Counted from the stretch's first letter, positions 11,436-64,000 are shown. The stretch: 64,000 bases of DNA from Auanema rhodensis (GCA_964057225.1 OZ059897.1:6262001-6326000); one strand, 5' to 3'. Made by a program: numbers and translations. Notes: generated from the letters alone by a model not told the origin.

Positions 11436-11926
11436 CCAGCCAACCGAAAAATTATAGAAATTGTCCATATTTTTTGAATTAACCAATTTGAAAAAAAAAA
11501 GTAAAAATTGAAATATAATAAAAGAAATAAATATTATAATCTTATATTATTTAATTGATTGAAATTGATTATAATTAACCTTACCAGTATTCAGACGTTA
11601 AGCTTTCTCATTAGATGTTAAGCTTTCTCATCTCATCAATTTAGATAAAACCTTATATATTCTTATTCTAAATAAAATAAATTAAAAAATACAAATATCA
11701 TAATGTTATTTACCAAATTCTTAACTATATCCAAAGATGAAAAACTGATTGTATTTGATTGAATCAGAAAGACAACAACCGATATTCAAATTTTTTTATT
11801 TTTTGTTGTCAGACTGAGATGAGCGGTTGTTTCAATAACATCAGCGAGAATTAAGAAAACGACATAAATCCGCATGTTTTAGTCGTTTAGACTGAAACTT
11901 TGTGAGAAAATAGTAGATAATGCTCA
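11436..11926 (-). repeat. Left arm of a 491-bp inverted repeat
   Basis: Reverse complement of 14187-14677; I found only two substitutions. Confidence 0.95.
11775..11875 (-). pseudogene. Lysozyme-paralogue 5' remnant (signal-peptide exon fused to intron-3-like sequence), with a GATA-rich promoter upstream at ~11930-12040
   Basis: AAACATGCGG start context and MRIYVVFLILADVIETT resemble the paralogue at 16671 (MRFLVLSYIFAAIATT); upstream GCTTATCTTTAAAAATT resembles GCTTATCTTTTGAAATT at 16590; AAACAACCGCTCATCTCAGTC matches intron 3 of the paralogue at 19968-21006 at 20/21. Confidence 0.6.
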
Positions 11927-13116
11927 AATTTGTCAAATTTTTAAAGATAAGCGACTAAATTTTTTTTTGTTTTTCTTTCTTTCAATGAATTAAAGATCAT
12001 TCTTTTCTTGATAACTATTAAGAGATAACATATCAAGTTTACATCATTTTACATAATGGTCAAAGCTCTCTGATTAACCTTTTGTATTAATTTTTATGAT
12101 GAAAATGTTCTTTTTATTCTTTTTAGTAATTTGAAGAATTTTACTTCATCATAGCCATCAAGAATTTGTAATAGCTGAATGAAATTCGGAACATGATATT
12201 CAATTTTCAATATGTTTTTTTTCCACAATTTCGATGTTATATCTTGAAAGAAATAACGGCACTGCTTAGTCAGAAAAATTCAAATTCTAACTTGGCGCCG
12301 ATACTATTACAGAATACTTTCCAATTTGTATACTGTTATCTATTCTTCAAAACATTTCAAATAGAAAGAATAAGTAAAAAACAGAACATTTAGCTTCCCA
12401 CTTCATTTACAGTGGAGATTTAAGTATTTTCAATACTAGGTAGATTCCAATATATAGATGTAGGCTAAATACAAAGTGTATCAACCTCATGAAATTTGAT
12501 ATTAACGTATAGTATATCACTTATATCTTCTCTAATGACCAGCTTAAGATGTTTTTTTTTTTCACGATAACATATCTCTGTTAACTGATAAGTGAAGGTT
12601 TTCGTATGTTCCACAAATAATTTATTTTTTAAAATACAACATATAACAATGAGAATTTATAATTGAATTTTGATTTAAATCTGAATATGAAACCATGTTT
12701 GTTTTTAAATTTTTGCTTGGGATCACATGGAATAATAATAATAATAGTTTTTAAAATTTGAATCATACTATATACAAATATTTTAATGAAGAGAGAAAGT
12801 AATTGAAATCAAAGAAAATCATTGTCGTCAGTAATTAAATTATTCTGAAATGACGTGCGATAACATATCTCTTTCTTATCTTTCTATAATAATTTTGACT
12901 TCTGGGTTTGATTAAAGAAAAAGAGAGAAGAAAAGAGAAAGAAAGAGAAAAAGAGAGAAAGAAAGAGAGAAAACAGAGGTAAAGAGAACAAAAGTGTATT
13001 TTCATATTTTATCTCTAAACTTTTGAAGCAAAGATTGATAAAGCAGTCTATATATTGTTAATGTCTAAGATATTTTTATTCATTTCTAAATTTTCTTAAA
13101 ATTTCTTGTAACAAAC

Positions 13117-14119
13117 ATGAAATTCCTAGCTGTCTGTTTTTTGCTCGTCGGCACTGCTGTAGGGGTAATCTGATAATTTTGAGATGTTATCAATCCTATT
13201 ATTCAAAATTTCAGACAACCACTAATGCAATAGATTTTTCCCAACCTATAGGCTCAGCTCAGATGGAGTGTCTGAAGAAAAACAACGTTGGAACAGTCTT
13301 AGTCAGGTTTTTATACATGCTTTATTCTTAATTATATACTTTTCAGAGGTTATATTGGTCAGAAAAATGGAATGACTGATTATAATTCATGTAATACGTT
13401 TAAATTAGCTCAAGCTTGTAAGTTAAACTTATTCCATATTCAAACACATTCATGTCTAAGAATGAAGATTGAAAAATTTAATTAGTTTTTCTGAATTATA
13501 GTTGACATACATTCAAATCTCTACATGGAAATGGCACCAAAAGGATCAAAAACAGGAGGACAACAGTTCATGGATATGTATAATAACTTAAATACTACGG
13601 CATGTGGAATACAAGGTGATGCCATAGAAATAGTTTGGCTTATGGTATATATTGCACTGTTGTTTCTTCAAATACTCATCTACTTAACAGGTTAGACATC
13701 CAGAAAATTGGCATAAGAATACTGCTAAGAATGTTGTATTCATTCAAGATGTTTTGACAACAGCTGGCCACCATGTAAGTTATATTTGAATTATCACATT
13801 TACTTTATTATTGATTTGTTTAGGGAACTTGGGTTCAAATCTATACTAACAAAGACGATTGGCAGACTATTACTAACGGCACAAGCATCACATCGTTTAA
13901 CAGCATTTACGAAACTACATTATGGTATTTAATATTTCAAATTCTTTATGATTTTACATATTTAGGCTTGCAAATGCCCCTAACTTTGGACAAGCTCCAA
14001 CAAACTTGACTTTCGAGCCATTTGCTGGATGGACAACTAGAACAGTTTGGGCTTACCAGTATGCTGAGCATCAAAATATTTGTGGAGTATCATGCAATTA
14101 TGATATGGTCTATTATTAA
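13117..14119 (+). CDS. Protist-type (GH25-like) lysozyme, lys-1/2/7/8-type, paralogue A
   Basis: Seven exons; signal peptide; AIDFSQP..QMECL..VRGY..G..D..C; YM..SKTGGQQ; PENW; IYTNKDDWQTIT; LW; PFAGWT; QYAEHQNICGVSCNYD. Confidence 0.9.
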
Positions 14120-14186
14120 ATTATGTTTTTTTCATATTTATAATAATAATAAATTAATTATTTCTTTCAAAATATTGAGATTTGGA

Positions 14187-14677
14187 TGAGCATTATCTAC
14201 TATTTTCTCACAAAGTTTCAGTCTAAACGACTAAAACATGCGGATTTATGTCGTTTTCTTAATTCTCGCTGATGTTATTGAAACAACCGCTCATCTCAGT
14301 CTGACAACAAAAAATAAAAAAATTTGAATATCGGTTGTTGTCTTTCTGATTCAATCAAATACAATCAGTTTTTCATCTTTGGATATAGTTAAGAATTTGG
14401 TAAATAACATTATGATATTTGTATTTTTTAATTTATTTTATTTAGAATAAGAATATATAAGGTTTTATCTAAATTGATGAGATGAGAAAGCTTAACATCT
14501 AATGAGAAAGCTTAACGTCTGAATACTGGTAAGGTTAATTACAATCAATTTCAATCAATTAAATAATATAAGATTATAATATTTATTTCTTTTATTATAT
14601 TTCAATTTTTACTTTTTTTTTTCAAATTGGTTAATTCAAAAAATATGGACAATTTCTATAATTTTTCGGCTGGCTGG
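14187..14677 (+). repeat. Right arm of the 491-bp inverted repeat
   Basis: Reverse complement of 11436-11926. Confidence 0.95.
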
Positions 14678-14775
14678 ACAATGAAAGACAATCTCCAAAT
14701 TTTACAATTTGCACAAAATGCTATGTTTGTGGAATAATCTGTAACAAAGATTTAACATTTAAGCAAACGTTTTAA
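14672..14775 (+). pseudogene. Orphan last-exon remnant of a lysozyme paralogue
   Basis: GWTMKDNLQILQFAQNA/(1-nt deletion)/VCGIICNKDLTF matches the C-termini of the neighbouring paralogues; no upstream exons 2-6. Confidence 0.8.
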
Positions 14776-15349: not shown

Positions 15350-16377
15350 ATGCAAGCTTGTGCAGCCTTTTTCAGTTTCATCTTGATCTTCTTCAATATT
15401 GCAACAACTCAGGTAATTTGTTGAACTTGTATCAAGTTTTAATCAATTTTTCTTAGGGTGTCACTCATCAAGCGATTGACTTCTCACAACCAATTGCTGA
15501 AAAACAGATAGAATGTCTTGTTTCTAACTATTACAATAAAATTATCATAAGGTTTTTTCAAATCATATAATTATTTTAATTATATATTTATAAACTTTAA
15601 GAGCTTATGCATCCAATAACAATGGAATGTTCGATTATAATGTATGTGCATCTTATAAAATGGCCGAAGGTAATACTCGCATATTTCATTATTTGGAAAG
15701 AGAAACAACTCTTTGATTTCATGTAAAAATAAAAATATTAATCTCAATCTTAAAGGAAAGCTTACTACATCGGTTTACATGGAGGCATCGGGTCAAGGAA
15801 TAAAAACAGCACAGCAACAGTTAATTGAAATGGAAAATGGATTTACCCTTTGTGGATTGGATAGAAAAGTGTTTTCTTTCTATTTATCGGTATATAATGC
15901 TTTTCCTCATGTTTATACTACTTTCTTTCTATTCATTATAGGTTACAAATCCTCAAAATTGGAGCTCAAATTCTACTGCGAATACCCAATTCATTCGTGA
16001 CTTTATAGATGCTTCTCAATTTTTTGTGCGTGATAGCAAGTTTTAGCTTAAATTTGTATTTGTTTCATTAAGGGATTCACCATGGGCATTTTAACAAGTG
16101 AAAGTGATTGGCGTACTATTACTGGAAATGCCAACATTATTGAAGTGAATAATGGAGTTCAAGCACTTCCATTATGGTATTACTCTTGTTTAATAGAATA
16201 TCCGAATATCTCTTGTTTAGGTGGTCTAATGCTCCTGCCTCAGGTCAAGGTGCTCAAAATTTGAATGATTTCAAACCTTTTGGTGGATTTTCACGTACTG
16301 ATGTTCAAGCTGTACAATTTGCTAAAAATCAAAATATTTGTGGAATATCTTGTAACAGAGATTTGCCTATTCAATGA
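15350..16377 (+). CDS. Protist-type lysozyme, paralogue B
   Basis: Seven exons with the same intron phases; AIDFSQP, RAY, GMFD, VTNPQNW, DWRTIT, DFKPFGGF, QFAKNQNICGISCNRD. Confidence 0.9.
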
Positions 16378-16465: not shown

Positions 16466-16468
<3 letters not shown>

Positions 16469-16555: not shown

Positions 16556-16559
<4 letters not shown>

Positions 16560-16670: not shown

Positions 16671-17679
16671 ATGCGGTTTCTTGTGCTCAGCTACATTTTC
16701 GCTGCCATAGCCACAACGGTATTCTATGAAATTTTATAATGATTTTTCAATAAATGTTTCTTAGACGTATTCTCTTGCGATAGATTTCTCTCAACCATTG
16801 ACTTCTACACAGATGAATTGTCTTTCTAATACAAACAATGAAACTTTTATATTCATTAGGTATTTTACAATTTGAAATCATTTTATTTCATTCAAATGTA
16901 ATATTCAGAGCTTATATGAGTACCAATAATGGAATGTTTGATACTAATGTTTGTAATACATATCAAATGTCTAAAGAATGTAAGTTATACACAGAAATAC
17001 AACCGTTTACCTTATTCTGACTATGAAAAATGAAAATTTGAATATCGCGCCTTTTGTTTTTCAGATCATAATATTTTTCCATACATTTACATGATACCAT
17101 CTACAACAGGAGCAAAAAGTGCAGAAGATCAGATCCAAGAGATGATCAATGGAGTGAGTAACTCAAATTGTGGATTACATAATAAGTTGTATTGGTTTAA
17201 TCTTTGGGTATACTATACTACTTCATAATTAATTTTGTACATATCTGTCTTTTAGGTTACAAATCCTCAAAATTGGAATTCCGATCCTTTTAAGAATTTC
17301 AGATTTATCAAGAAAATTGTTGCTTCAGCTAATGAACATGTAAATATAAGTTTTAATTCTTACTTGTACACGTTTTCTTCATTCAGGGTTGGTCTGTTTT
17401 AAACATTTATACAAATGAAAAGGATTGGAATCAGATTACTAACAATGCTGATAAAAATCAACTTATGCAATCAAATCTTGGATTATGGTATTTCATTTCT
17501 TTGAAATAGGTCATAATCTGCTTTAATTCTGTAGGTGGGCTAATGCTCCAAACTCTGGAGAAGCTCCCCAAAACACGAATGATTTCAAACCATTTGGTGG
17601 TTGGACAAGACCCACTATCACACAATATTCTAAAAATGCTGCAGTTTGTGGAATAAGCTGTAACAAAGAATTCTCTTAA
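16671..17679 (+). CDS. Protist-type lysozyme, paralogue C
   Basis: Seven exons; AIDFSQP, RAYMSTNNGMFD, VTNPQNW, IYTNEKDWNQIT, GEAPQNTNDFKPFGGWTRP, VCGISCNKE. Confidence 0.9.
17000..17037 (+). promoter_or_regulatory. Bipartite element CAACCG-N22-AAATGAAAAT (intron 3 of lysozyme C)
   Basis: Exact consensus; function inferred only. Confidence 0.55.
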
Positions 17680-17760
17680 CTATATGTAAATGCTGTATTT
17701 TTAAATTATTTATCGTACATAAAGTATTCTTTCCAAAACATCATTGTATTTTTAAGAAAA

Positions 17761-17798
17761 CAACCGTTCAACTAGAACTGAAAATTAGAAATGAAAAT
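17761..17798 (+). promoter_or_regulatory. Bipartite element CAACCG-N22-AAATGAAAAT (intergenic)
   Basis: Exact consensus; function inferred only. Confidence 0.55.
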
Positions 17799-18829
17799 GC
17801 AAATTTTGCTGGATTCATAAAAATTTTTTAAAGTTGTTTCTAAAAAATGAAAGTTGAATGTTTCAATTGTTTCGTCAGTAGTATTGATGATGTCTTTGAT
17901 GAAATCAACATTAGTCTCTGAATCACTACTTCAATCACTTGGTCAATCACTTGATATACTATATAATTCTATTATAAGTTATAAAAAATATATTTTATCT
18001 GTAGAAAAACATAAAAATTACAATTTTTACAATCATTCAACTCATTTATCAACTCAGTAACTTGTTGAGAACCGTTTTTACCACTACTTACAAAGAGCCA
18101 AAATATGAATTTCAAAATAAATTAAATACTAAAAATAAGGAAAAATTTCCATTTTCTTATATGATATTCAGACAATCAGCCGACCTATATGCTTTGTAGA
18201 TATCGTATTAGCTGATCAAATGTTTCTGGTAGTTGGTAGTTCAAAGTCTGATACAAGACGATAAATTTACTTAAATAATAGAATAAAAAACCCTTTTTAA
18301 AATAAATGAATTAAAATGTCAATCCAATAAAGAGAAAGATAATAAAAACTTCATTATTTATAAAAATGTTTTGAAGATATAATGATAAATTTCAAAAATA
18401 TTTTTATTATTTTGAATATTTATTTTAAAAATAATAAACAACAAAATCCTTATCTGTATGTTCATAAATTGAAATTTATTTATATGCATAGATTGATTGT
18501 ATGTATACTATATCAAATATATCAAAGTGAATATCAACTTTCTTCATATAAATTAGTATAAAAAGAAAAAAAAATATTTGAAAAACAACTTCTTCTCATC
18601 AACTTTTTGATTTAAAAGCATTCGATCAATATAACTCCAAAAAACATACATTTTAGTTATGGAGCATGAATATTATAAATATTTTTCATGAAATTATCAG
18701 AAATTAATTATTAATTTTGAATAAAAAAACAAAAATTCAAAAAAATAAATCAAAAAATAAAGATTAACATAAATTGTACAAAGACAAAGCTATGAAATTC
18801 TGATGTCAGGAACGAGAGGGTTCGTTTCT

Positions 18830-19310
18830 AATTTAGTTACAGCGGATGAAAAACTTTATGGGAATGTGAAAAAGAAAAGGTTTTGGGTAGATCCTGCGAC
18901 AGAAGTCCCTCAGACGTCCAAGAACACAATACAAACACCTCTGAAGGTCTTGTATTGGGGCTTTGATAGAGTTCTGTACTCTGGGAACTATCCAAATATG
19001 GTGAGACTGTTACAGAAAATGAAATATACAATTAAAGAAAAATGACCGAGAAGGAAAAGAAAAACATTTTTGCGGGATAATGCAAGACCTCATGTGAGCA
19101 AGATGAGAAAAGAGAAATTGGTAACATTTTTTTGTTATGATTTTGATCATTCACCTTATTTTCAAGAGTTAAAAAAGATAGAAGATACAGGATCATTTTT
19201 AACAGAGGTTTTCGCAAGTAAATGTCAGTGTGTTTTCAGATTTGGCATGGATCAATTGGTAGAAATATGGGAAAAGACTTTTCAAAACGAAGGAATTATT
19301 TTTGAACCAT
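18830..19310 (+). mobile_element. Degenerate mariner transposase relic (catalytic and C-terminal part)
   Basis: VTADEK..NVKKKRFWVDP, DNARPHV, HSPY, FASK..FRFGMDQLVEIWEK..NEG spread over frameshifted frames. Confidence 0.85.
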
Positions 19311-19397
19311 TAAAAATTATTCGATTCTTTATATATGTGAAAAAAATTCTTTTAAACTCATTTGTTTGGAAAGCTTGTTTGATTTTACTCTCTTTTA

Positions 19398-19643
19398 GAC
19401 TGAGAACAATCTCAGATCGAGAGTTGTTTTGGCTCAGGATCTCCTGAGAATGAATCAAAAAAGCGTTTTTTTGAGAGTTTGGTAACTGTAGACGTGAAGC
19501 TAATTTTCTTCTCCAACCCAAACATGCTTAACTTTCAGGTGAAGCCAAGTAAGGAGATTCCTATAATACCTAGGTCTAACCCACGAACTCATAAAAAGGC
19601 GCTGCTCTCAGTTTTCTGGAATAAAAACGAACTTTTCTATGAA
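19398..19643 (+). mobile_element. Second mariner transposase fragment
   Basis: TENNLRSRVVLAQDLLR/FFESLVTVDVKLIFFSNP...P...HKKALLSVFWN..ELFYE, matching the mariner IVTGDEKWI.Y.NP...HxKKVML.VWWD region. Confidence 0.75.
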
Positions 19644-19967: not shown

Positions 19968-21006
19968 TCAAGGAAATAGTCTGCTACCATAGTTATAACT
20001 CTCATTAACAGTTACTCCACAAACATGCATATATTTAGCAAATTGATGTAACTGAATATCTCTAGTTTCCCATCCACCAAACATGCCATTGTGATGCCTG
20101 GTCTCAACCGCAAGTCCGTTCTGGGTTTCTTCTGCAAGCCTGGAAAATTATTGGATGATTGGAGATGTGTTTTATTGAAAGAATAACCATAATGATGGTG
20201 GATATCGAGGAACAATGTCTGTAATCGAAGTTTCGTTGGTGATAGTTTCCCACGCATACTTATTTGTGTGAATGGTTTCAACATGCATTCTCTGCAAATG
20301 AATGAAAATGGAAAATTAAAATTGAATATTGAATTAATAACTCTTTCTCTACTAGTATAGATGATATCTCTGAGAACATCAACATTAATAATTGGATCTA
20401 CGTTCCATTCTTCTGGTTGTTCTGCCTTAAAGAGTATATCACAGGTCATCATGAAGTATAAAAATTTAACAAACCATAATGGAAAACCGGTTATTTTCAA
20501 TTCCACAAGAGCTCAACTCAAAAATCATCTCATCAACTTGGTCAGCTGCACTCTTAACCATAGTTAAAGAAGGTTTCATGTGAATTGCTACAGTTAATCC
20601 CAATTCTGAAACACAGTGCCAATTTCAAAATTTTCATTTTTTTATATTTTGACTAAGATGAGCGGTTGTTTGTATTTGAACATATATTTTATTACTTACC
20701 TTTTGCCATTCTATATGATTCACATATATTATAATTAAACATTCCATCATTTTCTGCACTATATGCTCTGAAAATAGAAATAATACATTTGGAAATTAAA
20801 AGAAAATGTATTGTATACTGCATGGATATAAATTGAATACCAGCGTCTTTCATACATTGTAGCTGATTGAAAGATACTGGCGGTGCAAAATCAACTTGAA
20901 CTCGACTCTAAAAACACTAATGAAACACAAAAAATCATTAGAAATGTTGGAAATATACCTGTGCTGAGACGACACTTACAACAATTATAGCAAGGATATA
21001 CTTCAT
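19968..21006 (-). CDS. Protist-type lysozyme, paralogue D (most divergent)
   Basis: Seven exons; MKYILAIIVVSVVSAQ signal; VDFAPPV..QLQCM; QAYSAENDGMFN; KSAADQVDEM; PEEW; IHTNKYAWETIT; FGGW; QFAKYMHVCGVTVN. Confidence 0.85.
20630..20668 (-). promoter_or_regulatory. Bipartite element CAACCG-N23-AAATGAAAAT (intron 3 of lysozyme D)
   Basis: Consensus with a 1-nt longer spacer; function inferred only. Confidence 0.5.
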
Positions 21007-21879
21007 ACTTGAAAGAAATGTTTGAATGATACGAGACTCTGTTATATATACTATTTCAGTTATTTTTATTTTGTTATATAACATATAAAATTGTTATCTA
21101 TGTGTTCAGAAATCAAAGCAAAACCGCATCACATAGATTATTATATTAATGAATTTGCAAACTTTTCTTTTTTTTAATAAATATTTCTAAAATCAGAATA
21201 TTTTAAAAGATGTATTAGATGATCAGCATTGTTATTTGAATATTGACGTAACATCATGACATGAGACACTTATACATTTTACCCATTTCTACTTCTAATC
21301 AATGGAAAATTAAAAATTCAAGATTAAAAACAACATAAGTTAGCAGGAAATGGTTTTGAGTATTGTCTGGAAAATGCTAATCAGTATTTATAAGTTTCGA
21401 TATGCTTGCATGTATGTTTGTTTAAGAACAATAAAACACATTTATCTATTTATTATTTACATATAAACAAATTAGTATATAAACTGAATTCAACATATTC
21501 TTGTAAAAACAAGAATATGTTGAGTTTTGCATGTTTAAAGAAAATAAACTTTGATAATAAAGATTTAATTCAGCTTCAATCGTTGAAAAACATAACAGAA
21601 GAACAAAAAAAGTTATTAAGCAGCGTACAAGAATCTTATTACATTTCAAAAAGTTTAACAAAGTCCTTCGTACAAATTACAAGAAAAATTCACAGATACA
21701 ATATTCAGATAGTATTTTATGAAATAGATTTTGTTGTATTTGAAGCCAAAGAGGAGCTCAGAGAGGATTTTGAAGACTTTTCAAAATTTAATTTCAAATA
21801 TTAAGTGTGTGAATAAATACGTGGCCATAGAATGTCATGTCGAAAAAAAATTAAAGAACTGTTAAAAGAGAAAAGAATT

Positions 21880-22200
21880 TATTTTTGAAAATATTATCCC
21901 CCCCCCCCTATCGATCACTTAAATTTCTTATTTCATTCCTGAAAAATAATTTAGATTTGGATTCGAAAAGGTTTTAATAAAAATTTCAACTTCCTCTATA
22001 GTTTTGAAACTTCCCCCTCTCAAACTATGTTCCATTGACCTGAACAGATGGTAATCTGTTGGTACAAGATCTGGAGAATAAGGGGGATAGGAGTCATGGG
22101 AACCTCCTCATCTGGGCTAACCTAAAACTTTGGCCTGGTTGGGTTGGAGTAGAGAATCCACTTATCATGAACAGAAATACCCCTTTCAAAATGAGAAAGA
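21880..22200 (-). mobile_element. Internally deleted mariner relic
   Basis: Minus strand HDKWILYSNPTRPKF*VSPDEEVPMTP joined directly to YPPYSPDLVPTDYHLFRSMEHSLRG.SFKTIEEV. Confidence 0.9.
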
Positions 22201-23054
22201 AGGATATGGCGCATATGTGCTACATCCATAACGACAAATCAAATAAAAATAAATAAAATTTAAAAACTTTTTTTTGTTTATTAGATTTAAATATATTCAA
22301 ATTTTGTAATTCTTTTAAAAAAAATTTAAATTTTTGTAAAATTAGCATATTTTTTCAGAATTCTACAGGGTGGCCACGTTGACACATCTTATAATTCATG
22401 CTAATTTTGAAATTTGGAATATTTATCCAAATTTCAATGTGGGTGGCCTGAAACCTTGACGCGCACCTACTATTTGGAGTAAGAAAAATGAAGTAATGAA
22501 TAAGATTAGATGTATTTTACAAAGATAAAGCTAGAAAGTATTATGATTGTATTAACTACAGAGATTAAATAATCTTTTGATTATTGATAAGTGATATCAT
22601 CTTTGTTCTTCAATTGCTCATTTCTTAGAATATAAAAACATGTAGTTAACTTAATTTGAATAACTATTTAAGAATGAAATTCTATAATTCTTAAAGAAAT
22701 ATCATGCTGAAACCTTTATTTCTGAATTATTTTTCTCAAGAAAATCTGATTTACAGGAAATTTATTGTAGATTCTGATGAATTTGTTGTAAAAAAATAGA
22801 ATGAAATCATATCTTATCAGTTATTATTATATTCCGGTATAATTAAACACTCCACCCTTTCTATTGTGAGGTGTCGTAATTGGAATAAAGAATCTTAAGA
22901 ACAGTACAACGTTTGAAATAATTAATTTAGGATAGAAAAAGGCTATTTTGTAGCTTTATCGTATGTAACTTCCTTGCTTGAACGACTATATAAACATGTA
23001 AATTAACTGATTATTTCATTGAACATATCATTTCAATTCTGTTTGATATACAAC

Positions 23055-24074
23055 ATGAAGCTTCTCATATTACTGTGCTTTTCCTTCATCTTCATTGGCT
23101 CGACAACAGCGGTAATCCACTTAATTTCAGGAATATTTATTTTTCATTACAATTTTATTTAAGGATGATCAAGCTGTTGATTTTTCGCAACCATTAACTA
23201 GCTCTCAAATGCATTGTGTTGCAAGTAACTTTTTCTTTGTTACAGTCAGGTATTTTATAATTTGAAATCATTTTATTTCATTCAAATGTAATATTCAGAG
23301 CTTATATGAGTACCAATAATGGAATGATCGACAATAATGTTTGCAATACATATCAAATACTTTCTGAAAGTAAGTTATAACTTTGTGAGTATCAGACAAG
23401 CTCATCTCGATCTCGAAGAAATTAAGTGAAATGGTGTATTTCGCTCATTACAGATCACGACATATGGCCAGGAATCTATATGATTCCTTCTGGAAATGGA
23501 TCAAAAAATGGAAATACTCAAGTTAATGAGATGATTAATGGATTGGGTGGACAATGTAAAGTATCCAATAATGTAAACTCTTTTCATCTTTGGGTATGAT
23601 ATCATAATTGAAGTGTCAAAACATTTTTCAAATTATAGATTACAAATCCTCAAGATTGGAGTTCAGATACATCTAAGAATGTTAAATTAATCCAAGATAT
23701 CATTCAGGGAGCTAATAAATCAGTGAATAATTTAAAATTCTAAATCAAATGTTTGTTATTGTTGTTCAGAGATGGTATGTCAGAAGTATTTACACCAATG
23801 AAGCTGATTGGAAAGCCATTACGAACAATGTGAACAATCAAGTTTTGGCTAATTATGATTTGCCATTATGGTATTTCATTTCTTTGAATTAGATCATAAT
23901 CTGCTTTAATTCTATAGGTGGGCTACTGCTCCAAAGACTGGAGAAGCTCCCCAAAACACGAGTAATTTCAAACCATTTGGTGGATGGTCACCTAATGATG
24001 TCCAGATCATACAGTATCAAAAGAATATACCAAGTTGTGGATTAAGTTGTAATACCAGTGTGTATGTTTCGTAA
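23055..24074 (+). CDS. Protist-type lysozyme, paralogue E
   Basis: Seven exons; AVDFSQP, RAYMSTNNGMID, SKNGNTQVNEM, ITNPQDW, IYTNEADWKAIT, FKPFGGW, CGLSCN. Confidence 0.9.
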
Positions 24075-24362
24075 TAATAATATTTGTAATAAAATAAATA
24101 TTTTATTTGAAATTTGATTCAAATACACGAACATACAATGAATATTCTGTTTTTATTTGAAATTTTGTGTCATTTTTTGAAGTCAAGTTGTATTACAGTA
24201 CCTACTATTACATAACAGAGTTTGTTAAAAAAAACGAAATGAAATCTGATCAGATAAGATTTTTGAAAACAAAAAATGAACTTATTTATTCAATATATTA
24301 ATAACAACACCTTTGTTAAAAAAAAACTGAAACAAATAAAGGAATCTCAGCTCGAAAAGTCA

Positions 24363-24400
24363 CAACCGTTCAGCTTTGTTTGAAAATGTGAAATGAAAAT
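24363..24400 (+). promoter_or_regulatory. Bipartite element CAACCG-N22-AAATGAAAAT (intergenic)
   Basis: Exact consensus; function inferred only. Confidence 0.55.
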
Positions 24401-24989
24401 TTGAAGCGCTTCGGCTTTTTGGAGAAATCTCGAAAATTCAAAACTTTGAAACATAAAGGTTTGTTTTTAAAAATTATCATGAAATTAGATATTTGAATAA
24501 ATTAATTTCAATCATATTCATATTCATTTCTATACATATAGTGACTTCTTATAATAAACTGTCAAATATTAAAAGTTTTAACAATTCTAATTCTTCATAG
24601 ATCAGGCTTTTACCATTAACCTATTATCTGATACTCGATGTGATGAAGAAAGAGTTTGAATTAATATCTTTTATATATTAAAATAATGAAGAAAATAATT
24701 AATTTATATGAATTTTTAACAAACAAATCTAGTTTATACATATAATTATTTATATTTATTCATTAAATATTAAATTTTTGTTTCAAATTTAAGTTTTAAA
24801 ATTTTTTTGTTTAAATGAAGTTTAAAAAGTTTCAAATTATTTATGTGAAAATATATTTATTTTATGAATTTCGAATTATTATTTGACGCTTAAAAATTCT
24901 TTTTAACATTCATATTAAGCCATATTTAGGTTGTAGTTTTGACGAATTCATCTTCAAGTACTCACGAATTGTGTTTCATGCTCATGAAC

Positions 24990-26297: not shown

Positions 26298-28804
26298 TTC
26301 CTTTAATTTTCTATGTACATATATGGATATATATGTATGTGTATGTAGTACGCAGTATGTATATCCTGAGGACTATAAAAGCTTCCCTATTACTCTTCAT
26401 TTCCGTCATTCCAATCCTATCTAAATCTACCTTCTTCCTTAATTCTTATAACTATTTTAGGAATATGTGTATAATTAAATATTATTCCAGTTATCAGATC
26501 TTTAAGCTTATCACACATTAAACAACATAAGCATGAAGAACTTCCTTATATAATTGAAAACATTCCCTCGTTTCTTAGAAATCATCAACGTCTTCACTAC
26601 TCAAATCATCGAAGTCATCTTTTTGGTTCAAGATTAGTAAGAAGATGATGTTTCATAGCAGTTTATTCATTTCAGAACGATCTTCTAGATCCGCTTAGTT
26701 TCAGTAGGATTGGCCTACTTTTCACTTGTCATCTTGAAATGTTCCAAATAATTTATATTAAACATCCAAAGTTAGACTCTATTCTCAATTTTTATTTCGA
26801 TTTTTACTTTTTTGAAGCAAAATGATTTCATTTTTCTCTCAAATTTCTCGAATAACTAATGTTTTTTGATATTATATGATAATCATCCTGGTTCCAATGA
26901 TCTGTGTACCATTGCGACCAGTATCGTATTTTCATTTTTTTTTTCGTTTTTTTCGCGGAAAAATGAAAAATTCTGTTATCGTTTCAAATAAATTTTATAA
27001 TGATCCGCTTATTCTTCAGATTATTGAATGTCAAAATGATTCTACTCCATCTTCGTTTCTTTGGAGTTAATTGTCCATCTGGCTAATACCAGTAGCTGGC
27101 TACTGGAATCTATATCGTTTCTTCGCTCTGTTCCTCTTCATTTCATCTCACAAGCTATGCATGTCTCTGCGCATGTTCTTAGTCACCCCCCCCCCCTCCC
27201 ACTCATACATATACATGGCTTGAAGACTTCTGTGGTAGTAGCGGACCGAGGCTTCATAGCTAACCTTACCCTCAACCCCTTCTCGTCTCCTCTCTACACC
27301 CCTTCAAACCTCTCTTCCCTCCCCTTTACTTTAGTCCGATTAATCCCATCATGCGTCGACTCACACACTTTCAATACATATGCTTTTGCTTCATATTCAA
27401 AGGCATCATTGGGTTTTTGTAGACCTTCATTATACATTATTCAATTTGTTTCATTTTCTCGTATAGTATTGAGGTGCTTTTTCTTTTTTTCTTTTTTTTT
27501 AATAAAAATACAAAAAGAAAAATAATAAATAACTATGTAAATATAAATAAATATATTCATATACATATGTACATACATATATACATATGAATGTATTTTC
27601 GACACAAAATTCACAATAAAAATTTGACTTTTCAATTAGGTTTCTTAACTTATAGCTTATTGTCTTCGATTTTTCATTAGTATATTCATTAACAAGTGGC
27701 AAAAAACGAGAATAATTCAGCATTTTTCTTATTTTTCCCATTTTTCATTCAATCCTTTATTCATATCCTTAATAAGAAATATACAAATTATATATTTTCT
27801 TTGTGAAAAAAAGCTCAAACTCACCCCATTTTCTTGATTTAAAGATTTTTAAAACTATATGTACTATGCTAAATGAGACATTTGCTTAATAGCATCCAAT
27901 TACAAACACTTACGTTGCTCATTTTCTCTTAAAGAATGGTTTTTTTTCTGTTAAAATTCTCACAAATACATTTTTTTGTCTTTTTCCTTGAAAAAAAAAA
28001 AGCTCTTTCATGAGATATTTGCATTTGTTTATCCACAAATAATATTATTTTGCGTCAAATCAATGATTACATTCATCTTCATTCAATTTACTATATACTA
28101 TTTGTAATCTTTTTTTCTTTTTTTTTCCAAATTTTTTAAGTGTTTTATCCTCATATTTGTCATTTTTTTTTCATTTTTTCTGCTTATTCGTTCATAATTT
28201 ACTTTCAATTTGTGGACACAGACACTCGCACCATCAGGCAATTTAGCGTTCAATGTCGTTTTCCTATTTTTAAAAAAAAAACATTGAAATCTAAATTTAT
28301 TGTTTTTGTTCTTATAATTTACCTATATATTATATAATATATATTCATATATATATATATATATACTAAAATACAAATGAATTAGAGTAAAAGCTTGAAA
28401 ATGGAGAATAACTAACTACAAGTTTTCTTCCAATATTTTCTAGTAGTAATGAGTTGACAGGAGAATATCTGCCTGTTCTCCTACTACTAAATCTATAATT
28501 AGTATATAGTATACATATAGTACACATATTTTATAATTTATCTTTGTAATATTTAAATTTATTTTTATATTTTCGTTAAAATTACTTATATCTATACATT
28601 ATTTATTTTTATTTTATTCCATCAACAAGTCTCTATATCATGTGCTTTCAATACTTTTTTTTGTGTGTCGGAAACAGTCGATTATATCAGCATTCAAATT
28701 TTATTTTTCGCGATCGTTTCAAGCGATTAAAATTATAAAACTTGAATTGGTCTCATGAAAATATATCTAAACTTAATTTTTTTTGTAACCTGTAACCTGT
28801 TCAC

Positions 28805-28834
28805 CATCATCATCATCATCATCATCATCATCAT
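28805..28834. repeat. (CAT)n microsatellite
   Basis: About 10 CAT units. Confidence 0.9.
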
Positions 28835-31138: not shown

Positions 31139-31181
<43 letters not shown>

Positions 31182-47521: not shown

Positions 47522-50500
47522 TCAAATTAGTGGAACTACATGATGTGATCCAGCTATTGTCATCTGTCTACTGTATATTCTATCTCGCTGACTGAAAAAC
47601 AAAAATTATTAGAGTAAATTCAAGAGATACTCTGCCAATAAGCATAATGCTTATAGCTTATGTCAGCAGCATCATCATGCACGTACGGTGGTGTGTAGTG
47701 ATCCTGAGTATTGCCACGTTGTAGTCGAACAGGATTGGATGACTGCTGCTGATATTCACGGACATCACGTGGAGCATAAGCTGGATCGACTCTACTCCAT
47801 TCTCGGAAAAGATTGTCACTTTTCGTATCCACACTAAAATCTCGCTGTAATCGAGCTGGAGTCGATATATGAGGAGAACTGATGTTACAATTTCGATTCA
47901 TTAATGATAATCGACGCTGTTCTGAAATAAGAAAATGAAATGTACTAAGCAAACAATAAACAAATAAACAAATTGTTTTGTTTCAAAATAATCATAACGT
48001 TCAATTGAATTACATACCTAAATCACTTTTAAGCGAATCAACACTACTTGTGAACAAGGGATCATGTGCTGATGATTCAGTACTGTTAGTTGAATCCATA
48101 GAAGAGACTGCAGTAGTTGATAAAAATTTTCTTTGAATTAGTAAAGATCTGAAATATTATGAATATCATCTAACTAATCTTAAACTTCATTAGGTAAATT
48201 TCATTCATATTTCATGCTTGTAGGGTTTTATATAAGTTTTGGGTATGTATTTGTAGGACGATTGTTTAATATTATATGTAACTATATACATATATTTACA
48301 TATATAGTTAAGCTATTGATTCATTTAATTGAGATATTGCATGGTTCGGGTATTTAGCAAGACAGGAAAATATTTGTTTGTGTCAAGTCATGCAGGTTCC
48401 ATAACAGTATCAATCTGGAAACCAAACCTACAAATTCTTCTGCATTCTTCGATTCCAATGAACATCAGACATCCGTCTGGTGACAGAACGCTTATGCTCA
48501 CTTTCAAACGATTCTCCATAATATGCATGATCCATTGATTTTGAGAATTGTTGAAGTTCTAAGCTTTCAGGTATAACTTCAGTCAATTTTCGATGCCAAT
48601 AATCGACATGATCATGTGATTGATTACGACGACTATAATCATAAAACTCTTCCCGTCGTGGCACTTCCGATGCTGGCATCATTGAGTATCGACGTCGTCG
48701 AACCGCATCCGGTACAGGAGCAGGTTCATAACGGCCACGACGAGCGGAATACGCATAGACATCAGTATTTGGTGCACCCGATACCGAGGCTCGTGGTCGC
48801 TTTTTATCGTGTTGAGTAAATGCACTCACACGCTTACAACTGGCCCTAGAAGAGAATTTTCGAGTCATTTTCTTTATCAAATAGCAAAAAGTTGTAAAAT
48901 GGAAAATGAAAAAAAGAATGAGGAAGGGAGGAAAAGGCGTAATGATACCGAAAACTACGACGTCGATCAAGTGCTTGATGTTTTGCGCTCTGATATGATT
49001 TGTGTACAGGACTGAAAGTATCTTACATGTTCCTAACATTACTCCCTGATAATGTAATCAGAAAATCATTTAACTTATAATATACATTCGTTTATACGTT
49101 TTTATGTGATATAATGCATGTTCTCATAAGATTTTAGTTGTTGAAGTTTCTCTAAATCTTATCAAACATACTTGTATTTCATTCGCTTCCGGTCAGCATT
49201 ATCTTCTTCTTTTGGCTTTGTCTCTAATGCAATTGATTGACTATCTGTATTTGAATCAAAAGAAGTAGAAGCAGAAGATGGATCAGAAATTCCTGCAAAT
49301 AGTACAATAAATATCAGAAAATGAGACTAAATCAACACAATAACAATATGAAATTAAAAAAAAAGAATCATAGATGTCCGAAGTATACTATGACATTGGA
49401 AAATGGATATGCTCATGCCAGGGAGTTCTACACATGTTAGTAGCCTACCTAGTGCGTGCAACTGCTCTAAATGGCCTTTTGCTGCCCAAAGGGAATGACA
49501 TGCTTTGCTAACAGGCGATTCCTATAAAATAAATAAAACAAATCTTCAATCACCATTATTGCGTGTTACATCATTGGCATGCTGCACTGTAGCTTGACGT
49601 ACAAATTGGTTCCGTTGCTCTGTCACAGAAACAGTACGCCTATCAGCCATAGACATTCGACGAGCATCCAGCGGTCGCGAACGATCATCGAATGATTTCG
49701 CCTAAATTTTGTCATATTACATAAAAATCAAATTAAAACAAAATTAAAATTTAATTTTCAACCGCTTTGGTCAGTAATGAAGTTGAAAAATGAGTTTTAA
49801 CATTATCACTCACTTCACGCAACTTTCACGTTCACTCATTATATGCTAATTCGTACCTGGCGTTGGAATTGACGAACAGATAATGAATGTTGTTCTTCTT
49901 CTACAGGCTCATTAATAGTTGGAATAAACATAGTTTGAGGATATATTTTATCCGGAGGATCGTAACAAGGATCAGGAGTATACTGTTCTTGTTGGACAGC
50001 TTCATAGCTTGTTCGCGATGGATATCGTTCACTTGTATTATTATATTGAAATTCTTCTGGCTAAAATCAATTCATATTTGTATATTATATATAATTTTCA
50101 CATATAATTTTCTTACCCTATTGTAATGATACGAATAGTGAGCTGCTTGTTGATGTGCAGGAGGAGAAGAGCACTCAGGATTCCATGATCTAGAGTATGC
50201 ATGACTTCGATCATAGATGCGATGCGTTGTAGGTGGACAAGGCGTTGAATTCTATTATTCAATTAACTATATGTAATAGATAACCTGATTTCAAACCTGT
50301 TTCTTTGGCATATATCCTGGAATGTGAACAGCATCACTTCTAGCAAATGTGCTCATACGACGATGTCGCTCTTCTTGCTGTTTAATCTGAAAGTACAGAT
50401 ATAGATACATATTATTTCATCGAATAATTTTTGTTTTTTTTGTTTCCAATAATTGATTAAATATCAATAAGTTATATTGATAACAATTTATTCTTATAAT

Positions 50501-52920: not shown

Positions 52921-53009
52921 ATTTTTCACGTAAATCCGATAAATTCACGTGAAAAATAACGTCATTGTACTTGATTCATTCATATTGCGGAAATCCTACA
53001 GAGCGGTTG
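52921..53009 (-). other. Bipartite element (CAACCG-N22-GAATGAATCA) plus downstream ACGT hairpin
   Basis: Perfect 11-bp inverted repeat ATTTTTCACGT/ACGTGAAAAAT at 52921-52957; TCACGTGA at +52. Confidence 0.5.
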
Positions 53010-53821
53010 ATTATTCGTTTACATCCGCATACTCGTACTTCCTCTCATTCTTATATTTATTTTATTCCATCGTTTATCATATTATATATATAACTCGTAT
53101 GATTATTAGGTTTTTTGAATACTTTTGTTGGAGAATTATGGTTAAGACTAATGAAGCCAAATAGTTGTTTTTACATATAGTTATAGCTAATAATGAATAT
53201 TATATTAACTATATATTCATATAATCTTATCATAGTTAATTATAATAAGATAAATAATTATATATTTGCTATAATATTATATGAATATTGTTTGGAATTT
53301 TAAAGCATTTGGTTACAAATCATACTCTTTCTCTCTCTCTCTCTCCCTCTCTATGAACTTCCTATTTGAACTTCCTCTATCTATTTTGCTAAAATCATTT
53401 CTATAACTATTTTGTCCATTATTTTATCTGATTTGATACAATTACAATTGTAAATTTTTTTTTTGCCATGGCAGTTTGCCAAGTCTTGAGATCATAGCTA
53501 TGCTTCTAATACATACGATCTCTTTAAACTTGCTTTTTTTTGCATTTTTTTTTCGAATCAAAAGACCATTCGATGATATTACAACCGCAATTCGTACATA
53601 TCTTGATTTCACGTTAAAAGTAAACACAATTTAGAAAATAAATAGGAGGATACGTTCAGATGAGAAAAAGAGGAAGGACGAGATTTAACAATTTGCATCA
53701 TCTGATATCTGAAGATGTTACGAAATTCAGAAAACCACTACATAGTAGATAGTTTAATCTCAGAGAGAATGTGAGGTAAAGATAGAAATAAGAAAAAAAT
53801 CATAGAGAGAAGGTATAAGAG

Positions 53822-59831: not shown

Positions 59832-62305
59832 ATGGATCCATATTTACAAAGTTCGCTGAATGGTATTGGAACTAATCCAACAGTTCTGAATCAGTCACCA
59901 GCAGAATTGCAAGCTTGGATAGCAACTTTGCCAGATGTAAGTAACATTTTATCTTGATCAGCACATGCCACATCAAGAATGTCTTGTTCACAATACATAT
60001 ACACATACACCTACACACACACCCACATACATACACACTCACCTATACATATGTATATATACACATACATTTAGAAATATAGATACCATTATAAACAATA
60101 AAATGATTGATTTATTACAGTTCCCTCGCTACTTGGCTCATCTACTTCAAGAACAGAAACAACAGCAGCAGCAACAACTATTTGAAATGCTTTATGGCTC
60201 GATGTCTCGTCCGCTTCAACCTATCTCAGGTGAGTCCGGAGAGGTGTCGTAGTTGAAACCTGTTTTTTCGACGATAACTCTTATTTATATTTGAAAATGA
60301 TGTTTAATTTTAGATCTAAGAACGTTTAATATGTCCTTACAAACAGAAAACGCATTAGCACCGCTTCAAGTGGTAAGTATAACTTAATTAGCATATTAGA
60401 ATATAGGTCACGTGAATATTATCTCGTCTCACGTGATCAGTTTTTGATTATTATTAACTCTATATGCGTCATAGTAAACAGCTGCATTCATACTCAACCT
60501 TTTAACATGATTCATTAATTACTTCTTTCAGAGAAATCAACTGGATGCAACATACGCGTCGTTGTCTAGTGCTAGTGCTCATCTCGTTTCTTCAATAAGT
60601 TCAACTGCAACTACATCCAACAAGCCAGTCATGGCATCTCAAATACCTGTTCCAACTCTACATGCTTCATATGATGTTCCCTTGGATTTACAGAGAAATG
60701 CGACATTGATGTCATATACTTCTCAAATGGAGCCTATACCTAGTGTTACTGCTCCTATTGCATCTACAACCATCTCTTCAGCTCCAGATGGAAAAACTAT
60801 GTTGAATTCAGTTGGGGGTTTAGCTTTTAACCCTCTTCTTACTAATTCTAAAGTTACCACGAACATGTCTTCTCCAGCCCATGAATCTGCTTCAAATCTA
60901 TATGCAGATGCATGGAAGAAAATTGGTCAGCAAAATTTTCTGGAGCATTTACAAACACCACCTGATACATCCCGCAGTTCGCCTGCTAGCCCTTCAACCA
61001 ATTCGTGTATTGCTTCAATTTGGCAACCATTTCAAACTCTCTATACAATGCAAATGACTTCGCAAGCTTTACCAATAAGTGCAACTAGTGATGGGAATAA
61101 CAACGATATGGTTTCGAACAGAAACAACGGAAAATTGAAAAGAAAGCGAAGCAGTGGTGACTCAGCGAAGCTTCTTGGAGCAACAATTAGTTCTCCGATT
61201 ATGAAATTTGCCAAAGGTTAGTTCGTTTCATATGTCCTTCTGTGTATGCCATAACTGAATTCAGAAGCACCTGAAGTTGGTTGTGACTATCAGCCTGGCA
61301 CATCACGTACATCACAAGCAAGTCCATGTGCTGAAGAAAGTATAACAGTCAAAAAAGAATCTGAGGACGATTCTGACGTATTTATCAATGTAGAAAGTGA
61401 GCCAGCTAATGGAAAAGTTCGTAGAGATCAGAAACGAGCCTTTTACTCAAAAGTAAAACATCTCTTAAAAAGGTAAAACAACTAATTCTCAAGTATTCAT
61501 ACGAAATTTCATGAACAATTGTTTCAGAGGATGCTCATTAACATGTAATTTATGTAAAAAGGATGTTCTTACAAATCACAACAGTGTAACTGATCATGTA
61601 GCCGAACATTCGGGTGAGAAACAAGTAGCTTGTGTATTCTGTGGATGGACTACATTTGAAAAGAGCCAAATGGGCATTCATATGAAGCAATATCATCCAG
61701 ATAAGAAGGTGAGCTAGCCAATTCATAATCAATTTCAGTCATTTTGATAATTTAGGAACAGAAATACGAAGATATACGTGATTTATCTAAGATGATTGAA
61801 GTTATTAACAATTGCTTCCCACAACCTGCGAGAGCTCGTCATGAATATGCCGGAAAATTGGAATCGTTTGTTCAGTAAGTTTCATTCATAATTTTTACAT
61901 AAAATTCAAAAATTATTCCAGAACGTTAATGGAAAGAAACATAACTAGAATAGATTGTGGAATATGTGAAATAAAAATTCCAGTTAGTAAGAAAATCATC
62001 GAAAAACATGCAACAAGCCATCCATATTTCAAGTAAAAATTCTGAATAATGAATAACACATATCGAAGTTATATTGTTTCAGATGCAAAAATTGTGGTTT
62101 TCTAACTAATAATGAGCAAGATCAAGTAACTCATCAGCTTAAAAACCATAACTTCAATGAGGGACTTCAAGTCGAAAGTGAATACACTCGTTGCACAACT
62201 TCTGATGTTATGACAAAAGTTCTTCGCAAATGCTTTTATAAAGCATTTCAAGAAATTGAAAAAACTCATCCAGCTCTTTCATATTCTGCTCTATCTACTT
62301 GTTAA
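59832..62305 (+). CDS. C2H2 zinc-finger protein with four fingers in two tandem modules and a Q/S/T-rich N-terminus
   Basis: Nine exons in frame; CNLC..HVAEH, CVFC..HMKQYH..CFP, CGIC..HATSH, CKNC..HQLKNH..CF; basic KLKRKR segment. Confidence 0.88.
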
Positions 62306-62780
62306 GTGTGAGCAGTAACTCAAATTTCAATTGAAAGCTAAAATGAATATATGTACATACCTTATATGTATCTACTATATATACAATGCTGTATCAGGGC
62401 TTTCAACATTTTTTCTTAATTTTTAAAAAATTCTTTCCTTCTTGCTAGTAAACTTAAATGGTCTCATCTGTTTTTCAAATTATTATTATATAATATAAGT
62501 TAATTTTTATTATAAATATTTCAATCTTTTGTTTGTTTTTAACACAAAAAGAAGCATCATGATATGAAATCTACTTTTTTTTCAACTTTTAGAATCTTTT
62601 TAATCCTTTTTCTGTTTTCGAATTTATTTTTTCCTTCCTCTACATTACCTGCCTTTTCATTTTATTTTTTCAAATTACATTGCTGCTTTAAAACATCTTT
62701 TTTCTATTTTTTTGTTGTTCAAACTGACTTCAGCTAGAATCTCGTTAACTTGTGTCGTTCAAAAACTTTTTTGTTGGCGG

Positions 62781-64000
62781 CTAATACTTTGTACAGTATG
62801 CCATTATCACAAGATCTTCTTGCAATAGCTGTTCAATCTCGTTCTCTTTCTGATTTTCTTTTTATATTCATAACTATGCCAATACTTGATTTAATAAATT
62901 TGTTTTTAATGTTTTTTATGGAGAACTGACCTCTAAACCCTCTGTACTCGGCAGTTGTCGTCCAGTACCACGTGGCACATCACAAGAAGCACGTCGTAAC
63001 TGAATTTTTTAATTTTCAAAAAAATTTAATTTTTAATTCAAATTAATAGCATTAAATAATGTATGTTATTTGTTTAATTAAACGGAATTGATGTTTAGCT
63101 ATTTGCTTGATGATAGCTACTTTGAATAAAATATATAATTAGCATAGTTCACGCAAATATGCATGCAATGCGTGAAATATTCATTTCTGTTTTAGCTCAT
63201 ACGTAAACCGGTTGAATACACTTCCAGAATATAAATCCCAAAGCACTTTTCTGTTTTTATTAATTTTGTATTGTAAAAGAATAATATTATAGATTATATT
63301 ATATATGGAAGAATTTGAGTAGTTACCTCTTGTCCATCATTAACAGATAATAACTCAGCTGAATGAGCTCTTAATGGTAATTCGCCTACAGTTAAAAATG
63401 ATGAAGCTGAAATTTATTATTTTTTATTTCATTTAAACTATATGTAATAGCAGTACCTCTACTTTGAATATTTGCTTGAAAGTTATTGTGTTGAGGCAAA
63501 TCTTGATGACTTTGAACAAGGCTTCTTTGCACATATGGAGTTTCTTTTGGCATTAATGGAAACACCTGAGCTATTTTGGTTGGAGAACCGAAACATCCAG
63601 ATTCTCGATCTATTACTGTATCTATGCTGAAATTCAGTTAACTTAGTTTCTTATAATTTAAAAATATTTTACGTTTGTTCTTGAGAATGATCCTCTAAAA
63701 GAAGAGGGAGTGGTCGGCATTGGCTTGGCTGTTCACTTCGAATCTGTTCACGCTTCTGCTCCGGTTTGCATGTTCTGAAACTCAACAGGATTAAGATGAT
63801 CTGGTGATCTGATGACAGGCTTTCCAAGACAAAATAAAAATAGAGTCAAGTGTCTTGAAGAAAATTACATGTTCATGAATTATGAAACTCACGTTGTAAC
63901 CGGTGGTCGTTTTTTCAAACAGAAACGATACAGATAAACCGCAGTTATAACCACGGCCAGTCCGCCGACCACTCCTGATACGAGTACCGCGATAGTAAAC
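62781..64000 (-). CDS. 3' part of a single-pass membrane protein gene (5' end outside window; last exon tentative)
   Basis: FTIAVLVSGVVGGLAVVITAVYLYRFCLKKR (TM helix + basic stop-transfer), then in-frame exons TCKPEQ..., IDTVIDRE..., ASSFLTV..., LRRASCDVPRGTGRQLPSTEGLE, KENEIEQLLQEDL...*. Confidence 0.65.
63144..63214 (-). other. Bipartite element (CAACCG-N22-AAATGAATAT) plus TTCACGCA/TGCGTGAA hairpin, intronic
   Basis: 12-bp inverted repeat with one mismatch at 63144-63180. Confidence 0.5.

Follow-up and report, generated by a model that had tools for sequence, protein, structure and literature searches.

A 64,000-nucleotide stretch of the Auanema rhodensis genome (GCA_964057225.1 OZ059897.1:6262001-6326000), hereafter called the window, carries dispersed copies of a two-box element whose boxes are held at a fixed distance. 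An earlier note on this DNA described the element as CAACCG (box 1) followed 22 or 23 nucleotides (nt) later by an AAATGA-type sequence (box 2), and proposed it as a candidate promoter for an unannotated class of small RNAs. On the strand used in that description the boxes match nothing known. The opposite strand reads TCATT(T/C)-N22-CGGTTG(T), or ATTTTCATTT-N22-CGGTTG, and fits exactly the combination of an initiator (Inr) and a downstream core promoter element (DPE). Judging from these sequence features, we consider it probable (roughly 0.6) that the module represents a class of TFIID-type, TATA-less Inr+DPE core promoters that is coupled to CGTGAA/E-box-like sites and has been expanded and stereotyped in Auanema. 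The earlier proposal was sound in describing a promoter-type, protein-bound element of fixed spacing, but it named the wrong strand and the wrong promoter family.

The hexamer CAACCG occurs 17 times in the window compared with 7.2 occurrences expected, and the combination CAACCG-N20-25-AAATGA is found seven times against an expectation of 0.05, a count reached in none of 100 shuffled sequences. A histogram of CAACCG..AATGA pairs separated by no more than 80 nt exhibits, inside the window, a sharp peak, with 8 of 13 pairs falling at two adjacent spacings. Viewed from the opposite strand, six of the 17 CGGTTG sites have TCATT(T/C) at exactly N22, two have it at N23, and two have TTATTT at N22; a CGGTCG at position 38521 also has TTATTT at N22. 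When DGGTTG sites that lack the leading C are considered, TCATTT stands at that spacing in only 1 of 57. The two-box motif and the positions originally assigned to its copies hold with a single correction, in that the site placed at 11777 lies at 11776 and has its inverted-repeat mirror at 14332. The decayed copy suspected near 23396 is real. Copies were anchored by hand, as MAFFT alignments put the anchors in the wrong places.

The DPE is a textbook core-promoter element of flies and is rare or ill-defined in humans. Core promoters of Drosophila that combine an Inr with a DPE were reportedly described by Burke & Kadonaga (1996/1997) and by Kutach & Kadonaga (2000), and the element is said to correspond to motif 9 of Ohler (2002). 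The DPE is defined as RGWYV at +28 to +32 (RGWYVT to +33) with strict spacing (PMC5580651), and Ohler's fly consensus, as quoted in PMC4803293, is CRWMGCGWKCGGTTS. Saito et al. (PMC3730108) report no enrichment of the DPE among C. elegans start sites.

With the A of TCATTT taken as +1, the spacer of the Auanema module occupies +5 to +26, the C of the second box is +27, and GGTTG spans +28 to +32. A position table was compiled for 17 copies from A. rhodensis and the related species Auanema melissensis. The initiator consensus TCAKTY is matched by TCATTT or TCATTC in 14 copies, and the other three carry TTATTT. GGTTG is present at +28 to +32 in 16 copies and GGTCG in one, with T at +33 in 11. 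The downstream box proves to be longer than earlier thought, reading RARCGGTTGT on the opposite strand, that is R(+24)A(+25)R(+26)CGGTTG(+27 to +32)T(+33); G is found at +24 in 12/17 copies, and A or T at +25 in all 17. The spacing is N22 in 11 copies, one base longer in four and two bases longer in two. No copy (0/17) has TATAWA between -40 and -15. Pyrimidine-rich leaders follow in only 4/17 copies and so are not a general feature. The composition 3' of all TCAKTY sites was uninformative, given that 343 such sites exist in the AT-rich window.

The module thus shares with Drosophila Inr+DPE promoters the sequence TCA(G/T)T(C/T) with its A at +1, RGWYV(T) at +28 to +32(33), the lack of a TATA box and a free spacer. 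It further shares with Ohler's DPE the CGGTT(G/C) core, the G at +24 and the W at +25. These last two positions agree with the '...G W K C G G T T S' of that consensus, a comparison for which the G at +24 of flies is taken from the version quoted in PMC4803293. The Auanema module differs in belonging to a nematode genus, in being far less degenerate (CGGTTG in 16/17), in its coupling to oriented CGTGAA/E-box-like sites that often occupy the TATA position, and in the many copies that are intronic or antisense.

This coupling is evident on the promoter strand, where at least one CGT(G/A)A lies between -12 and -60 in all 12 non-lysozyme copies from the window and A. melissensis, and within -28 to -33 in 7 of these 12. 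TTCACG is not enriched across the window as a whole (23 sites versus ~20 expected), yet 11 of the 23 sites lie within ~100 nt of the five copies that are remote from a cluster of lysozyme genes. On the strand of the original description, each of these five copies consists of the box pair followed by two to four TTCACGTGAA-type boxes. The association holds in A. melissensis: of the CGGTTG sites preceded by at least two ACGT boxes, 7/7 are accompanied by an Inr-like sequence at, or close to, the expected position. In contrast, CGGT(T/C)G without such boxes has no Inr-like site in 6/6 cases, and a seventh adjoins an assembly gap.

By analogy with Drosophila, the functional strand would carry, in order, activator sites, the initiator TCATT(T/C) with its A at +1, an unconstrained 22-nt spacer and the DPE. 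From one to four CGTGAA/ACGT sites, resembling an E-box or a cAMP response element (CRE), would act as activator sites within ~60 nt upstream, one often near -30, the place of a TATA box. TFIID would contact the Inr and, via TAF6/TAF9, the DPE, so that transcription starts at the A, and factors of the bHLH or bZIP type bound to the ACGT boxes would supply activation. As for the nature of the transcripts, sense-intronic copies might provide alternative internal mRNA starts, and other copies might produce non-coding or antisense RNAs.

To compare species, an exhaustive protein search with the 215-amino acid (aa) exon adjoining the 38521 copy was made, and it returned an orthologue (P0001) that is 70% identical. 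Its locus, L001, is from A. melissensis (GCA_943334845.2; PMC9984802) and is syntenic with the window over an M23 peptidase gene, a 409-aa gene, a BTB-BACK gene and a 399-aa gene. A second protein, P0002, found no placement on any contig. Together with locus L006, the A. melissensis sample comprises 39 kb with gene calls and holds seven modules; L006 (13.6 kb) contributes no further modules. The orthologue of the 38521 copy is at L001 14403 and reads TCATTT-N22-CGGTTG, 56 nt before the same exon. Those of the 44159 and 49764 copies are at L001 18712 and L001 22780, the latter reading TCATTT-N22-CGGTTG inside a called gene, 20517-23362(-). The orthologue of the 53004 copy, at L001 24576, reads TCATTC-N22-CGGTTG as it does in the window. 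All four modules of the collinear interval are retained in both directions between the species. Spacer identity is 0.41 in the orthologous pairs versus 0.31 between unrelated copies. Because the boxes are kept at orthologous sites where the spacers have been randomised, the boxes are under site-specific selection.

These findings also bear out the earlier view that a protein-bound element of fixed spacing is at hand rather than a decaying transposon, since independent copies are alike only in their boxes. Spacers are indeed unrelated outside the lysozyme cluster, with an identity of 0.31 between the far copies against 0.58 among the lysozyme paralogues. The ALTERNATIVES tested were a structured small RNA, a transposon, a polyadenylation (poly(A)) signal, a promoter of the SNAPc or proximal sequence element (PSE) type, the Ruby motif and a rival resembling Piwi-interacting RNA (piRNA) loci. 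That the copies are a miniature inverted-repeat transposable element (MITE), or else a 3'-end or poly(A) signal with AATGAA/AATAAA on the strand first described, is extremely unlikely. Box 2 does hold AATGAA or AATAAA, and five copies closely follow a gene in sense orientation when read on that strand. However, Lys D has its own AATAAA 15 nt past its stop codon, with the element ~290 nt past the stop, and no 3' end could use the 38521 and 49759 copies, given the strand on which they lie; the poly(A) reading of box 2 was rejected for these three. All-against-all comparison of the copies with 550 nt of context yielded only paralogous or orthologous flanks and CT repeats. The copies do not align end to end, independent copies have no homology beyond the boxes, and terminal repeats are not apparent, so that the mini-transposon alternative raised in the earlier note was also rejected. 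Orthologous retention with randomised spacers likewise speaks against neutral repeats.

A promoter of the SNAPc or piRNA type was suggested in the earlier note. Such a SNAPc-dependent, PSE- or Ruby-type promoter would make CAACCG the upstream element and AAATGAAAAT a TATA-like sequence, with the RNA beginning 20-25 nt farther on. The ~22-nt distance from CAAC box to A/T box loosely recalls the arrangement of PSEA and TATA in fly U6 genes, and a likeness between CCGTTCA and the Ruby core had been pointed out. This heptamer is found in only two paralogous copies of the lysozyme cluster, within the variable spacer and on the other strand from the Inr and DPE. The region that would be transcribed consists of ACGT boxes, which are palindromic, resemble protein-binding sites and form no significant structure. 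A structured RNA or hairpin built from these boxes was rejected, with z values of -0.6 to -1.9 relative to shuffled sequences on both strands and the palindromic ACGT boxes as the only stems. At the Rfam gathering threshold, the window contains only 23 tRNA-Leu genes and no small nuclear RNA (snRNA) or other known RNA gene. Neither Rfam nor significant folding reveals an snRNA, spliced leader (SL) or other small RNA gene directly downstream of the modules. Upstream of them no Ruby motif (CTGTTTCA) or SNAPc-like motif is present, and CGTGAA/ACGT boxes stand there instead.

The C. elegans PSE consists of two submotifs 5 bp apart (PMC2527325), compared with the spacing of 22 in the module. Among the promoter motifs known as UM1, UM2 and UM3, UM1 is this PSE, UM2 is a tRNA-like pair of A and B boxes, and UM3 is PSEB plus GTATA. 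Like the Auanema module, they may sit in introns and drive independent small transcripts, but none has a 22-nt spacing, and no non-coding RNA gene follows the Auanema modules. Since the opposite strand also matches a known bipartite element exactly, a SNAPc-type promoter is very unlikely, though marginally less so than a transposon or poly(A) signal, and the boxes are better described as a TFIID-type Inr (TCAKTY) and DPE (RGWYVT at +28 to +33). The 23 tRNA-Leu(TAA) genes form a tandem array with a 221-bp period at 162-5108 (-). Their scores of 42-63 bits indicate that several are diverged, and each spacer of the array has one CGGTCG without an Inr at DPE spacing.

The distribution of the module was also assessed in orthologous loci (23-33 kb each) of Mesorhabditis spiculigera, Diploscapter pachys, Haemonchus contortus and Caenorhabditis angaria. 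None of the 27 CGGTTG sites in these loci has TCATT at the right spacing, and ~18 modules would be expected there at Auanema density. In this sample of ~100 kb from four other rhabditid or strongylid genera, the module therefore appears to be restricted to the genus Auanema. The window has 11 modules per 64 kb. Genes number one per 5.4 kb (PMC9984802), and the module density over the 64 kb and 39 kb sampled (about one per 5-6 kb) is close to this gene density.

Restriction to one genus in the sample would suit a non-initiating platform for lineage-specific factors, such as an enhancer, an insulator or boundary, or a chromosome-structural site, whose likeness to Inr and DPE would be coincidental. 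So would the occurrence of copies in any orientation and position relative to genes, and the lysozyme copies that lack ACGT boxes, in which the bipartite core alone must be recognised. Nevertheless, the chance of matching TCAKTY, RGWYVT, G at +24 and W at +25 at one spacing and in one orientation is, by a rough estimate, well below 1e-4. Moreover, the ACGT boxes are strictly oriented upstream of the Inr side, which is what a unidirectional promoter predicts. We consider a platform of this kind improbable.

Another explanation, possible though not likely, is that the copies are autonomous short-transcript units. Each would be a self-contained mini-gene for RNA polymerase II (Pol II), giving a short capped RNA with pausing at ~+28 to +35. 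The product could be a piRNA precursor of the Pristionchus type, with a 21U RNA beginning at the T at +3 of C-A-T-T (a YRNT), or some other regulatory small RNA. Pausing would be signalled by the GC-rich CGGTTG box together with the T-rich sequence after it, and in this genus the ACGT boxes would take the place of the Ruby motif. In flies, DPE and pause-button motifs are linked to paused Pol II, and the Drosophila pause button is KCGRWCG at ~+25 to +35. The module resembles it in placing a CG-containing box over the DPE position, followed by sequence of lower stability, but CGGTTG differs at one position, and pausing here would be an analogy.

Pristionchus-type piRNA loci start at YRNT and have a pausing signature downstream of the start site; of those within genes, 97% are in introns, split about evenly between sense and antisense (PMC6436959). 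The Auanema modules are similarly dispersed single units, intronic in both orientations as well as intergenic, with a YRNT and, ~28-38 nt downstream, a signature like that associated with pausing (Beltran et al. 2019, PMC6436959). In the Inr, YRNT is matched with a T at +3 in 17/17 copies; C-A-T-T at the start, seen in 14/17, is non-specific in being part of any TCATTY initiator. The box of high melting temperature and the T-richness after it (T at +35 in 13/17) resemble the pausing signature (PMC6436959). In addition, several copies have no plausible gene downstream, and extrapolating from the density gives ~10,000 copies, a number within the range seen for piRNA loci.

The retention of 4/4 collinear modules at orthologous sites, where neutral sequence is saturated, is unexpected for dispensable piRNA loci with fast turnover. 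In nematodes, the Ruby motif upstream of piRNAs originated from core promoter elements of the snRNA/SNAPc kind (PMC6436959), and nothing resembling Ruby or a SNAPc site is present in the modules. Unlike Pristionchus-type loci, they carry an ACGT/E-box-like sequence upstream in place of the Ruby or SNAPc-derived one, and their sites are conserved between species. A fixed distance of 56-58 nt to the next exon in two species, and the long C/T-rich, leader-like tracts after four copies, also argue against short units. The bolder proposition is doubtful, namely that Auanema has acquired ~10,000 Pol II mini-units (ACGT box / Inr / DPE-pause box), autonomous and conserved in position, and that these, whichever way they face and whether they lie in an intron, a 3' flank or intergenic DNA, produce short capped RNAs without dependence on the host gene, as a TFIID-type substitute for the Ruby/SNAPc piRNA promoter or as a new class of cis-acting regulatory small RNAs.

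The gene contexts of several copies are consistent with Inr+DPE promoters. In A. melissensis, module 5366(-) of L001 is sense and 394 nt upstream of the M23 coding sequence (CDS), and 7869(+) is sense and 2.1 kb upstream of the 409-aa CDS. The 38521/14403 module (+) is sense at the 3' end of a 2.7-3.9-kb intron in both species, 56-58 nt before the next exon. It is taken to be intronic because the 409-aa gene model is backed by strongylid orthologues covering 100% of P0001. The 49764/22780 module (-) is sense in intron 1 of the 399-aa gene, whose exon 1 is in frame with exon 2, and exon 2 has an in-frame ATG. The gene downstream of the 49759 copy has a 203-aa exon, for which a homology search gave no match. 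Overall, two of the seven A. melissensis modules are sense upstream of a CDS, two are sense intronic and three have no annotated gene downstream.

Several observations weigh against a promoter function of this type. Many copies are away from annotated 5' ends. Two are antisense in short coding-region introns of lysozyme genes, and five are directed into the 3' end of a convergent gene (the flanks of Lys A, B and D; 63209; and 16694 in A. melissensis). The conserved intergenic copies at 44159 and 53004 have no annotated gene downstream, and no module lies upstream of the CDS starts of the BTB, g399, DB, pepsin-inhibitor and g143 genes. The lysozyme-cluster copies have no ACGT boxes at all. The spacing is N23 or N24 in 6/17 copies, and in flies a 1-nt shift weakens the DPE. 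Finally, a general TFIID element is not obviously expected to be restricted to one genus.

The 44159 pair lies divergent to the BTB gene, and the 53004 pair divergent to the 399-aa gene. Past these two orphan modules, blocks of non-annotated sequence are conserved at 78-86% identity (46084-46381 with L001 19791-20020, and 53916-53965 with L001 25046-25096). These could be exons of unannotated transcripts or long 3' untranslated regions of convergent genes. The 7869 module of L001 (contig 21504) has no detectable counterpart in the window. The region downstream of it corresponds to window positions 27000-31500, a strongly strand-skewed, C/T-rich region with a GC skew down to -0.37 and long CT/GA microsatellites.

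Outside the lysozyme cluster, the module at 38435-38527 (+) has CGTGA/CGTAA at -56, -44 and -29, then an Inr-like TTATTT (A+1 = 38495), N22 and CGGTCGT (+27 to +33). It lies in the sense direction in a 3.9-kb intron of the 409-aa gene, 58 nt before the exon that starts at 38579 (aa 142-207). The module at 44066-44165 (+) carries four ACGT-core boxes (TCACGTAA, TTACGTGT, TCACGTGAA and ACGTC) ahead of TCATTT (A+1 = 44133), N22 and CGGTTGT; it is intergenic, divergent from the BTB-BACK gene (-, ATG at 43349), and followed by a C/T-rich tract. At 49758-49848 (-), TTAGCAT at -58 and CGTGAA at -39 and -28 precede TCATTT (A at 49791), N23 and CGGTTGA (49764-49758); in sense orientation, this module takes up the whole of intron 1 of the 399-aa gene (155 nt, 49856-49702). 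The module at 52925-53010 (+), intergenic and divergent from this same gene, has TTCACGTAAA and TTCACGTGAAA boxes (-49 and -30), TCATTC (A+1 = 52978), N22 and CGGTTGA. That at 63139-63215 (+) has TTAGCAT, TTCACGCAA ... TGCGTGAA, TCATTT (A+1 = 63183), N22 and CGGTTGA, and is directed into the 3' end of a - strand gene.

TTAGCAT or ATGCTAATTA, which is POU/octamer- or homeobox-like, precedes the distal ACGT box by 10-15 nt in several modules. Such sites are found in the window at 49842-49848, 63139-63145 and 60387-60396, and at ~18660 of L001. The intron at 60372-60530 (+) of a + strand gene has TTAATTAGCAT followed by two CACGTGA boxes 21 nt apart. This pair of ACGT boxes was rejected as a copy of the module because it has no Inr or DPE, indicating that the ACGT-box/octamer-like part also occurs alone, like an ordinary enhancer.

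The lysozyme cluster comprises five GH25-type genes (Lys A, A2, B, C and D). Its copies are all paralogous and fall into two series, one intronic and the other in 3' flanks. The intronic series, in short gt...tttcag introns, is ancestral to all five genes and antisense to them, intact in Lys B and C and recognisably decayed in Lys A, A2 and D. At 16999-17043 (-), TTCAAATTT-TCATTT-N22-CGGTTGT lies in a 94-nt intron of Lys B (+) without ACGT boxes, and a paralogous copy with N23 occupies the same intron of Lys C (-) at 20628-20669 (+). The copy at 23391-23432 (-) in Lys D is decayed, reading CAGACA ... AAGTGAAAT on the + strand, and remnants in the same intron remain at ~13420-13500 of Lys A and ~15690-15750 of Lys A2.

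The other series occupies the 3' flanks of Lys A, B and D and is directed back into the genes. Its paralogous copies are found at 17760-17804 (-), 82 nt past the Lys B stop codon; at 24362-24406 (-), ~290 nt past the Lys D stop and beyond the AATAAA at 24088; and at 14283-14337 (-), ~180 nt 3' of Lys A. The last has an Inr-like TTATTT, with a further CGGTTG on the opposite strand. It lies where one inverted-repeat arm has its inner edge, and its mirror is at 11776-11830 (+) in the other arm. The 491-bp inverted repeat surrounds Lys A (arms at 11436-11926 and 14285-14775), has a module directed inward at each inner edge, and in each arm the module forms a small palindrome with CAACCG...CGGTTG 48 nt apart.

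In lysozyme copies, either both boxes are intact or the element has decayed, and spacers are only ~58% identical, a pattern that suggests selection where the element is kept. These copies may serve antisense transcription, enhancer-type initiation or short-RNA units. A remnant of a mariner/Tc1-type transposase, an open reading frame with 'DNARPHVS' at 18803-19447 (+), lies between Lys B and Lys C. The syntenic interval of A. melissensis lacks the cluster (~11.4-24.4 kb), which thus represents a lineage-specific insertion or expansion.

A near-invariant Inr+DPE identical to that of flies, present about once per gene in a nematode genus, would be surprising for nematode transcription. If the promoter reading is true, recognition of the DPE by the basal machinery would be functional in nematodes, and core-promoter usage would have been remodelled within a short evolutionary span. 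Activity of the intronic and antisense copies would imply widespread internal and antisense initiation, or a new source of small RNAs. Applied to the annotation of Auanema genomes, the module predicts start sites along with alternative isoforms, and it would offer, from sequence only, a handle on start sites that trans-splicing otherwise conceals in such an organism.

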